NCBI RefSeq assembly: GCF_023055435.1 | Contig: NW_025963890.1 | Location: 57,598,001-57,662,000, forward strand | Direction: 5' to 3' | Length of the DNA stretch: 64,000 bases | Source of the DNA: Haliotis rufescens | Taxonomy: Eukaryota | In this document: positions 3,070-53,494 of the stretch, in pieces | Numbering within the stretch: the stretch's first letter is position 1 | Layout: each line of letters opens with the position of its first letter | Made by a program: the position numbers and the translations under genes | The notes under the pieces: model-generated | The model's database searches: none | Told to the model about the DNA's origin: nothing | Seen by the model: the letters and a program-made list of their open reading frames with translations, nothing else

Positions 3070-3083
3070 CATGCGATCATGCA
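3070..3083 (-). promoter_or_regulatory. RBFOX-type intronic splicing motifs (UGCAUG and GCAUG) downstream of the microexon
   Basis: Plus-strand catgca (3078-3083) and catgc (3070-3074) read UGCAUG/GCAUG on the transcript 83-96 nt after the microexon donor. Confidence 0.45.
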
Positions 3084-3165
3084 CATGAAATGTACGACTA
3101 CAGCTAGAGACATCTACACGAGGGAATGGACGAGAGTCAACTGCAGCATTCTCCAAACATGTTAC

Positions 3166-3183
3166 CTGTGAAAACCTCCAATG
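3166..3183 (-). CDS. MACF1/DST: 18-nt microexon of the same spectraplakin gene (HWRFSQ), plectin exon 2-alpha-like
   Basis: Minus strand: ctgac...tcctcttcctgttgattacatgcag|CAT TGG AGG TTT TCA CAG|gtaaca. Phase 0/0, so it joins in frame after KHLLK; peptide resembles plectin 2-alpha HWRAE, which sits at the same position. Confidence 0.72.
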
Positions 3184-4983
3184 CTGCATGTAATCAACAG
3201 GAAGAGGATACCACTGTCAGAAACAAACATCACAGTTGTCAACAATATTAAATATGAATACATCAATACAGTCTTCTCACGACAATAAACCATCCTGAGA
3301 CATAATAACTTCATGGACAGAAAGTCCTTTCCTTTCCAATAAATGTCCACCCAAAATGAATCTACTGGCCATAATTGTTCCTTGGCATCATTTTTCGGAA
3401 GAACATTTTCTTTTCATATGGGCTTGCAAAAAGCTATGTATACTTGCCCCAAAGAATTTTTCCAATAACCTTGGGATTTCACCAAGGGTCTGTCATCTGA
3501 TACTGGCATACCAATCAATTATCCCACTAAATATATGAAAAAAGTCAAATTCATCCCATTTAAATAAGTATGTAAATACAGATGAGGATCAGATCAAGAT
3601 AAGAGGATCGTATCATTGGTTCCAAGGCAGTGTGGTCTCTCTCTATAATGGGAGACAACTCTGTAAGGCTGTTTGCTCATTCCCCAGTACACTGGCCAAC
3701 TTTACTTTACTTGCTGTAAATGGCTGTTGTATCATGGATGTGTTGAAACACTATTACACATGATTTTTCCTAAAATTCAATTCAGCCATTCCTGTAATGA
3801 GGGTCCTATTATCAACTGATAATTCTGGTATGTTTAGCCATCCATATCAGGTCATGTCATGACCAAACAAATATCTACGAACATAAATTATAAATTTGGT
3901 CTATATATCATTGTCTTTTTATTCTATCCCTTATCACACATGTCAGTGTAATATATACATAGGTACATCGCATCTTCCCCACTGATACGAACTGAGCCTC
4001 AAGCACAATGTTGCAAACAAATGTAAATAATTAGCAATGTCTACAGCAGCTAGAGCTCCTGGGGACGATTTGAAGTTTTGTAAGATTTTTCTATTCCACT
4101 GACAGCAAAAGCTTTGGATGACAAAAATATTAACGATGAATTCGGCATCGACTAAATGATGACATGAAACTGTGTCTTGAGAGCAGGTTTTAATACTGCA
4201 AAACAGAAATAATACAAATTTTGAAACTGACATCAATTTTAGTCACCAGGTACAATTAAAAGCAACAGAACCAGGCCTAGACAGAAATCTTATATTTCCA
4301 TGAAATGACCCAAATGAATAAATATAAACCTCAAACAAGCTGTTAAAACCATTTAGATTTATTGTTATTCAACATTTTGAAATGAAATCCACAAACCAAT
4401 TTTTTAAAACTGGTTTAATCATTGTACAGACACTGACAAGTTAGAGGTGTACGTGTCTCCCAATCCCGAGGGGGTAGGTGTTGCAGTGCCTGGTGCATGG
4501 AGACTGTTATCATTGTACGTTGAACGAGGTGTACATGTCCCTCTGACTCATGCACGGCTTCATCTAGTCTGTTATCTCACATATACTCGCCCATATCTCA
4601 TACATCACACACCTTCTGTAAATATCAATGTCAGAATTGAATCTGTGTCAGGTTTATACACGTGCTGGGATGGGAATCCAAAGCAAGAGACTTTGTCTCT
4701 GAGTTTAAAATTCCAAATGCAACTTGGCAGTATGTCCCTTATTATAGACATGATCAATGGTAGTCTACATATTTATGTCAGGTATGTAATTTGTGGCTGC
4801 AACTCTTCCTATTTATTGTTTGCATGTCCCTTCCAAACTTTCAAAGTAATTATAATCATGAATATCACACCAAAATAGTTAACATTTTATTATGTACATA
4901 TTGGCACAAATTTTTCATGCACCTGTTACAAATATGGAAACTTTCAAAATTTAAACAATAGTTATCATTGTTAATAATTAAAA

Positions 4984-8043: not shown

Positions 8044-8994
8044 TACTCAAATGAAGTTAAAGAACATCTTTTGAGTAGTATATATAATCTCATCACTAAT
8101 TGCTCGGACTGTAGGTTTCTCAGTATTGATGACAGAACTGAATGCAAATTTGTAACATCAAGTGTTAAAAGAAATTACCACACTGGAATAAGATAGCTCA
8201 TGGACACTAGGGCAGAGGACAAGAAGAATCAGCCATTTATAATCAATAAAAAATAATCTGCTGATAATGTGGAAGTATTTGTAAAATTTGTCAATATCCG
8301 TTTTGTTCCAGATCATTTTTCACTGTTCAAAGATTAGTCAGAAAATACAGGTATTGCTTCCAAAAGTCTATCTGAATGTCATGACAACCAACACGTAGTC
8401 AGAACACTTTTAGGCAAGACAATGAAATATGAACTAAAAGACAAACAACAAAAATAAATAAAGAATCTTCATCAATCAACTACATCTGATAACCAAAAGT
8501 TTAAAATATTGAACTTCTAAAACCAAAACAGAAAATGAATGATTTTTTCCCACAATATAATGAAAAACATGACAGGAGAGACAAACATGAAAAACAAAGG
8601 CTATGGTTGGTATGAGGCTGTAGGAGTCTGAGTACTATTACCACATATCTGGCACTGCATGGGAATGCCTTATCTAATCAACGTGGGATAACATTACCAG
8701 TAGCCTGTAGTTCTCCACTCCAGGAACCTCCCTGAGTTTGTTTCCCACAAGTTTATTAGCCTTATTTCATGGAGCGCCATATGCTTCACAAGAGACCAAA
8801 TAGGCTCAGTTCATAACCTGGCAATGGGCTGATGAGTCTGCGACCAGGGACGATGGAATGATGGCCTGGATGATATTACAGGCTTACATTTTTGTCAATT
8901 TCTTTCTGATTGAAAATTAAAATGTTATAAACGAAGTCGGATTGTTAATCATTGCTCCTAATATGATACTTTCAAAACTTCATTATTTTCAGAT

Positions 8995-9240: not shown

Positions 9241-9462
9241 TTATTTTCATCATCTTCACTGTTTGAACATCAACATGATATGAGCATCATCATCAACACA
9301 ATCTTACTAACATTATAATCATAATCATAATCATCATAATCATCATTGCCATCTCAATAACATCATCAAACCCATTAACTCATTCATAGCATCAGCAGCA
9401 ACATCACCACCATTTTAATCAACATCATCTCGTTAACATTATCACCATCATCAACATCAAGC

Positions 9463-9671
9463 AGACACAATTTATGGATAAATTATTTACAGTAAAGGTG
9501 ACGTTCCATTTATAGATCCTTCAAGCAAGGCTTGAGGTATAAGGTATAAGGTTTTAGGTATAAGGATCTATACCGAAACGTCACCTTTACAGTAAATACT
9601 AAAGTTGTTATCCTTAAATTGTGTCTACTTTGCCATCCGTCAACTTTTAAGTAGTGCTTTTTAAACAATTC
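9463..9671. mobile_element. Inverted pair of Penelope-like element end fragments
   Basis: 9463-9525 is the reverse complement of about 9562-9627 (aaggatctataccgaaacgtcacctttacagtaaata...atccttaaattgtgtct); a related copy at about 48044-48150 shows it is a dispersed repeat. Class inferred from the ...CCGAAACGTC... motif and inverted layout. Confidence 0.5.
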
Positions 9672-50061: not shown

Positions 50062-50123
50062 CTTTAATAAATGCTTATTGACCCATTTTGTAAATGTCTT
50101 CTTCTGAACAGCGTCTCGCTGGT
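50062..50123 (-). CDS. MACF1/DST: Spectraplakin (short stop/MACF1/dystonin/plectin family) internal exon, N-terminal helix of actin-binding CH1 domain
   Basis: Minus strand reads gatttctgtttcag|AC CAG CGA GAC GCT GTT CAG AAG AAG ACA TTT ACA AAA TGG GTC AAT AAG CAT TTA TTA AAG|gtgagt = (D)[20 protein letters not shown]. Canonical AG/GT sites, 62 nt, phase 1 to phase 0, matching plectin exon 2 ([21 protein letters not shown]). VNKHL favours spectraplakin over beta-spectrin/nesprin (VNSHL/INSHL). Confidence 0.93.
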
Positions 50124-53362: not shown

Positions 53363-53494
53363 NNNNNNNNNNNNNNNNNNNNNNNNNNNNNNNNNNNNNN
53401 NNNNNNNNNNNNNNNNNNNNNNNNNNNNNNNNNNNNNNNNNNNNNNNNNNNNNNNNNNNNNNNNNNNNNNNNNNNNNNNNNNNNNNNNNNNNNN
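53363..53494. other. Assembly gap (132 N)
   Basis: Run of n adjoining a tandem array. Confidence 0.99.

Follow-up and report, generated by a model that had tools for sequence, protein, structure and literature searches.

The window analysed here is a stretch of 64,000 nucleotides of Haliotis rufescens DNA, in which a gene read on the minus strand carries a candidate exon within a 50,563-nt intron that is in phase 0 at both ends. The intron is bounded by two exons of calponin-homology domain 1 (CH1), of which the upstream one ends in ...KWVNKHLLK and the downstream one, exon 3, opens the rest of CH1. Exon 2, the upstream constitutive CH1 exon, occupies 50062-50123 on the minus strand (62 nt, ending in phase 0); its 3' end reads ...CATTTATTAAAG/gtgagt at 50062, also written ...AAGCATTTATTAAAG/gtgagt, where the slash marks the exon boundary, and its 21 encoded residues, which form the start of CH1, are identical to residues 40-60 of XP_046365486.2. 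The upstream exon had been predicted to lie about 47 kb away, and by measurement its donor at 50062 is 46,878 nt from the candidate. Upstream of exon 2 the window contains 132 N at 53363-53494. Exon 3 (minus strand, 90 nt, 30 residues, phase 0) lies beyond the window, 503-592 nt to the left of its base 1 (9409-9498 in the fetched neighbouring DNA) and 3,667 nt downstream of the candidate, and reads ttccag/GCTGGAAGG...ATATTG/gtaagc. Further downstream in the same neighbouring DNA, CH1 exon 4, with 26 residues, is found at 8680-8757, and CH1 exon 5, with 30 residues, at 8200-8290; the intron separating exons 3 and 4 is roughly 650 nt long.

As for the identity of the gene, a search of the exon 3 peptide against 1.84 billion protein representatives led to a 4,995-residue protein that is identical across exon 3, namely XP_046365486.2, annotated as 'microtubule-actin cross-linking factor 1, isoforms 1/2/3/5-like isoform X11' of Haliotis rufescens. 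The original prediction had taken the gene for a spectraplakin, and the match of this MACF1-like isoform X11 to both exons 2 and 3 bears this out; moreover isoform X10 of the same species has 6,792 residues, with plectin repeats (PF00681). Molluscs have a single spectraplakin gene, to which plectin, MACF1 and dystonin correspond as relatives in vertebrates.

The candidate itself is the 18-nt stretch CATTGGAGGTTTTCACAG at 3166-3183 on the minus strand, which would encode HWRFSQ in phase 0/0, and which is the conserved core of, and nested within, a 48-nt exon of the relatives' public models (3166-3213, minus strand, 16 residues, phase 0/0). Its splice context reads ...tttctgacag tggtatcctcttcctgttgattacatgcag/CATTGGAGGTTTTCACAG/gtaacatg, the upstream flank being also written as ...tttctgacagtggtatcctcttcctgttgattacatgcag. 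A common donor, CAG/GTAACA at 3160-3165, would serve both the 18-nt and the 48-nt forms, while the nested acceptor UGCAG at 3184-3188 has a UGC (3188-3186) right before its AG (3185-3184). The pyrimidine-rich tatcctcttcctgtt at 3196-3210 may be either the tract of the 18-nt form or the codons Y-P-L-P-V of the 48-nt form, and in the same manner ctgacag at 3214-3220 may provide either the acceptor AG (3215-3214) of the 48-nt form or a branch-point-like CUGAC (3220-3216) for the 18-nt form. Downstream of the donor, two RBFOX-type motifs are located at 3070-3083, a TGCATG at 3083-3078 (+83) and a GCATG at 3074-3070 (+92 to +96); all of these elements are likewise on the minus strand. Hence the HWRFSQ stretch, the ctgac, the tract, the cag and gtaac at its two edges and the GCATG motifs at +83 to +96 were all located as originally described. 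Both ends of the intron being in phase 0, an insert of 18 nt keeps the frame, and in fact the 18-nt and 48-nt forms are both stop-free, multiples of three and in phase with both neighbour exons.

Several properties set this stretch apart from the rest of the intron. Among the 1,031 in-frame candidates of the form AG/9-30 nt/GT in the intron, it is the only one to start with HW, and an in-frame AG/HWR.../GT of 9-30 nt occurs in 3% of 300 first-order Markov introns of 50,563 nt, with a mean of 0.04. When lengths of 9-60 nt are considered, the intron offers 1,751 in-frame AG..GT candidates, none other of which equals this one in donor and pyrimidine tract jointly, and its donor score falls in the top 0.6% of them, the scoring being a crude one made of a hand-set donor matrix and a pyrimidine count. 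Moreover, only 1.2% of the 100-nt windows of the intron contain at least two GCATG. The candidate stretch is single-copy in the H. rufescens genome, and with one genomic match only, a fragment of a repeat or transposon was ruled out.

The conservation in related species that the original prediction supposed is indeed found. At the same junction, the core (Y/F)MQHWRF(S/T)Q is present in the protein models of H. cracherodii (black abalone), Mytilus edulis, Crassostrea gigas and Lottia gigantea. In H. cracherodii, XP_071119797.1 (isoform X15), which belongs to the same 90% cluster as XP_046365486.2, includes a 16-residue insert, and the inserts of this isoform and of XP_071119796.1 (isoform X14) are identical to the translation of the window from 3213 to 3166; the exon there uses the same donor as the 18-nt candidate and starts 30 nt earlier, at ctgacag/TGG. 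A 16-residue insert also stands at this junction in M. edulis CAG2194122.1 and in C. gigas XP_011436141.1, where it is followed by V and a stop. The oyster model, ending ...HWRFSQ-V-stop, continues past the donor of the exon into the intron, and is either a truncated transcript or an incomplete model. For L. gigantea XP_009056903.1, only ...FMQHWRFSQ is conserved, and the residues upstream are unrelated and come from a predicted exon of another length.

Between the gastropod and the bivalves, the insert is identical in 14-15 of its 16 residues, and exon 3 is identical in 28 of 30 residues between abalone and Mytilus. The identity of the insert is therefore about that of the flanking constitutive exons, which is unlike neutral intron sequence, and it is very unlikely that the open frame is there by chance. 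Part of the support for the exon-including models may come from ab initio prediction, or from one such model having served as protein evidence for another. In the JGI metagenome contigs, a degenerate DNA pattern of (Y/F)MQHWRF.Q followed by GT gave no match. Judging from these protein models, we consider that the conservation of the exon across molluscs is real. The further expectation that gene predictors would miss the exon stood in part, for it holds for isoforms X10 and X11 of H. rufescens, which are without the exon, but not for H. cracherodii, in which it is annotated.

The comparison with vertebrate plectin gives this exon its probable meaning. The insertion site and the phase proposed for it agree with those of plectin exon 2-alpha, which follows KWVNKHLxK and precedes exon 3 of CH1 in phase 0/0, and vertebrate plectins were the best matches when the insert region of H. 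cracherodii was used as query. More than 100 plectin representatives, from rays to mammals, have HW(R/K)(A/V/T/G/P)E between KWVNKHL(I/M/V/L)K and (A/S/T)QRH(I/V), and forms skipping HW(R/K)xE are equally common among the representatives. The same alternation is met in the structures of the plectin ABD, of which PDB 1SH5, 1SH6 and 1MB8 contain HWRAE and 3F7P is without it. Moreover HMMER aligned the HWRFSQ of Lottia to the HWRA-E of 1SH5 and 1MB8, with the upstream residues treated as an extra insertion. In both systems, an intron lies after ...KWVNKHL(I/L/M/V)K and before A(Q/G)R(H/R)I.DLYEDL, and the insert is in phase 0/0, preserves the frame, contains HWR and is optional in annotation. The two differ in length, with 15 nt in plectin versus 18 or 48 nt in abalone, and in the ten further residues of the annotated mollusc form, which are without plectin counterpart. 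They differ as well in the tail behind the common HWR, which is FSQ in the abalone exon versus AE in plectin 2-alpha, and three residues cannot prove homology. In the plectin-b or plectin-like genes of teleosts, we observed the 2-alpha versions HHRRAE (stickleback, 18 nt), CVHHRWAG (trout, 24 nt) and FRTAQ (Takifugu). This variation among the teleost plectin-b paralogues means that the exon can change its length. Altogether the position, the phase and the HWR motif make it probable that the mollusc exon is the counterpart, that is the homologue, of plectin 2-alpha.

It is also conceivable, though we regard it as the less probable explanation, that the mollusc exon and plectin 2-alpha had separate origins, with the phase-0 intron behind CH1 helix A acting as a hotspot, so that the HWR would be convergent or coincidental. 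This would agree with the distribution of the motif, as an HW-type insert was found in none of the insect (fly, mosquito, ant and bee), nemertean, amphioxus or lamprey cluster representatives returned. Annotations often lack short alternative exons, and since only cluster representatives were compared, the absence from these intermediate lineages is weak evidence. It would agree as well with the insects, in which annotated beetle and sawfly isoforms (MACF1/dystonin) of the spectraplakin gene (shot/MACF1-like) have an insertion in CH1 at the same site, the junction after KHLKK. In contrast with the mollusc exon, the insect insertion reads TYTCLHVCV..NN.PCC.P and has 19-20 residues of unrelated sequence; it thus tells that the site tolerates and recruits new sequence independently. 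Besides, it is contiguous with exon 3 in genomic ORF fragments and so has the look of exon 3 extended by way of an alternative acceptor, not of a cassette exon, and as a homologue of the mollusc exon it was rejected for its unrelated sequence. On a wider scale, the eMIC programmes of fly and mouse have only four exons in common at equivalent positions, most of which are better explained by convergence (PMC8797185). Nevertheless, an HWR would occur by chance in a 16-residue insert at about 2 in 10,000 by our own estimate from typical residue frequencies, and the mollusc exon and plectin 2-alpha lie in the same intron and in the same phase, both ending just before A(Q/G)R(H/R)I. A common origin of the two exons is the more probable reading.

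The extent of the exon is a separate question. The AG located 30 nt upstream is used in the models of H. cracherodii (X14 and X15), M. edulis and C. gigas, which yields the 48-nt exon, and because these models start at the upstream AG, what had been taken as a branch point and a pyrimidine tract is in them an acceptor and coding sequence. Thus the 18-nt boundaries first proposed stood at the donor, which is common to the relatives' models, and the Lottia model favours the 18-nt core, but three models give 48 nt. A single donor (between 3166 and 3165) would then be joined with two nested in-frame acceptors, producing either the 48-nt form (3166-3213) or, via UGCAG, the 18-nt form (3166-3183), and the abalone could use 48 nt, 18 nt or both. 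The residues M-Q (AUG CAR) before HWRFSQ are kept in all four mollusc lineages, and this fits either a coding sequence or a conserved UGC-AG acceptor. The next AG stands at -91 from the start of the 18-nt exon, so that the 58 nt before the acceptor AG of the 48-nt form are without AG.

A less likely reading is that the exon is exactly an 18-nt microexon whose upstream 30 nt represent a conserved intronic splicing element of the SRRM/eMIC type, made of the CUGAC, the UCUUCCU tract and the UGC-AG; in that case the predictors in four species would have drawn the exon too long, as far as the next AG upstream. Such a microexon is favoured by the fact that a branch point is not normally used with an AG only 2-3 nt behind its A. 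Moreover, Lottia has FMQHWRFSQ only, and its ten upstream residues are unrelated to WYPLPVDY; as it keeps just the 18-nt core and the MQ, a conserved intronic element may account for the upstream 30 nt, which the predictors would then have read as coding. In size, too, the short form is close to the 15 nt of plectin 2-alpha and equal to the 18 nt of the stickleback HHRRAE. There is also a resemblance to the neural microexons controlled by SRRM3/4 (eMIC-domain) proteins, the architecture of which has been described as a UGC near the 3' splice site, long UCUC-rich tracts and strong branch points (PMC8797185). In the abalone sequence, a UGC at -5 abuts the nested AG, 14 of the 15 positions of tatcctcttcctgtt are pyrimidines in a UCUUCCU-rich tract, and the branch-like CUGAC lies 34 nt upstream of the nested AG; as with those microexons, the exon belongs to a cytoskeletal gene and has highly conserved flanks. 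On the other side, eMIC exons are expected to have a long AG-exclusion zone, which here is limited to 30 nt by the AG at -32, and the annotated 48-nt form exceeds the 27-nt definition of a microexon, with the 18-nt form nested within it. It also tells against an exon of exactly 18 nt that three separate annotations, two of them by NCBI Gnomon, begin at the same AG/TGG, and that PLPV, though it differs in Lottia, is identical in abalone and bivalves at codon positions 1 and 2, which exceeds the needs of a generic pyrimidine tract.

Optional use of the exon is suggested by the annotations, where the RefSeq isoforms X10 and X11 of H. rufescens skip it and the otherwise co-linear isoforms X14 and X15 of H. 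cracherodii include it; no species with both including and skipping forms was found among the protein sets returned. Transcript-like data were considered in the form of contigs of four sequencing runs (labelled X1, X23, X24 and X10) over 5.5 kb with exons 5-3 and the candidate. Exons 3-5 are covered by contigs of runs X1 and X10, and run X10 leaves the introns between exons 3-5 uncovered and so behaves like RNA. In the bin of the candidate, the depth is zero in all four runs, to be read with the facts that run contigs drop minor variants, that an 18-nt piece would not align alone, and that three abundant repeats obscured the exon 3 boundary. Inclusion of the exon is not dominant in those four run samples. 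As a side observation, very abundant repeats contribute pieces to three segments of the intron, and to these segments contigs matched by the tens of thousands, from the RNA-like runs of several related organisms; two of the segments are at about 1500-2000 and about 1-101 of the window (3500-4000 and 1995-2101 of the fetched stretch), and the third is at 855-1041 of the fetched stretch. We infer that the exon is spliced into H. rufescens mRNA.

That the candidate is no exon at all, several predictors having mis-called either non-coding sequence under conservation or a frame left open by chance, is very improbable. In favour of this are the zero contig cover, the lack of the exon in H. rufescens X10 and X11 and the visible imperfection of the M. 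edulis and Lottia models (the former skips exon 4). Against it speak the conserved AG and GT flanks, the open frame that agrees in phase with the two neighbour exons in all four lineages, a peptide conservation equal to that of the neighbour exons, the resemblance to an alternative exon that is proven in vertebrates and occupies this very site, and the inclusion of the stretch in two full-length isoforms that Gnomon gives for the sister species H. cracherodii. Our main reading, to which we give a probability of roughly 0.7, is that the candidate is a real, frame-preserving and optional short exon of the spectraplakin gene, which is conserved among molluscs and is the counterpart of plectin exon 2-alpha.

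Concerning the regulation of this exon, the signals downstream of the donor may be compared with those of cassette exons activated by RBFOX. The UGCAUG at +83 and the GCAUG at +92 lie within the range where RBFOX sites enhance inclusion, just as in such exons; a difference is that there are no more than two such motifs, both read here from the H. rufescens sequence. Taken with the UGC-AG acceptor, the two GCAUG motifs are compatible with activation of the SRRM and RBFOX types in neurons or muscle, and by analogy with such exons the inclusion of the abalone exon may be tissue-regulated, as the original prediction had proposed.

The effect on the protein may also be considered. In the family of ABDs built from CH domains, the first CH1 helix carries the first actin-binding site. 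Inclusion of the exon would lengthen the protein by 6 or 16 residues where this helix ends. In plectin, the 2-alpha exon contributes five residues and enhances actin binding, the 1c-2-2alpha-3 variant is brain-specific, and the ABD with 2alpha/3alpha shows better co-sedimentation with microtubules (PMC8464768, PMC7891324, PMC8391331). Enrichment in brain, muscle or heart is likewise known for the plectin exon (PMC8464768, PMC7891324). By analogy with plectin, the insert would alter the affinity of the ABD for F-actin or microtubules. For the CH1 of Lottia with its insert, an AlphaFold2 model reached a mean pLDDT of 63 and about 50-55 in the insert, too uncertain for use.

A more far-reaching scenario, which we put forward only tentatively and as rather unlikely in its full form, would place the HWR exon in the common ancestor of protostomes and deuterostomes. 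Both molluscs and vertebrate plectin would then have retained it, over more than 500 million years, for the regulated switching of the spectraplakin ABD, and in molluscs two nested acceptors (18 and 48 nt) would yield graded variants of the ABD under a control of the UGC/SRRM and GCAUG/RBFOX types.

As the exon is contained in the public protein models of four molluscs, it is not new as a sequence feature. Its link to plectin exon 2-alpha, on the other hand, appears to be unreported in the searchable literature: no paper was found that combines microexon with spectraplakin or that contains HWRAE, and two papers combine microexon with plectin. To our knowledge, very few alternative exons are common to protostomes and vertebrates. 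For the annotation of the red abalone, the result means that the RefSeq isoforms X10 and X11 lack an exon present in the annotation of the black abalone. If the mollusc exon is a true counterpart, it would offer an invertebrate system in which the effect of the insertion on actin and microtubule binding may be studied, and the tuning of the ABD by this insertion would predate the origin of plectin itself.
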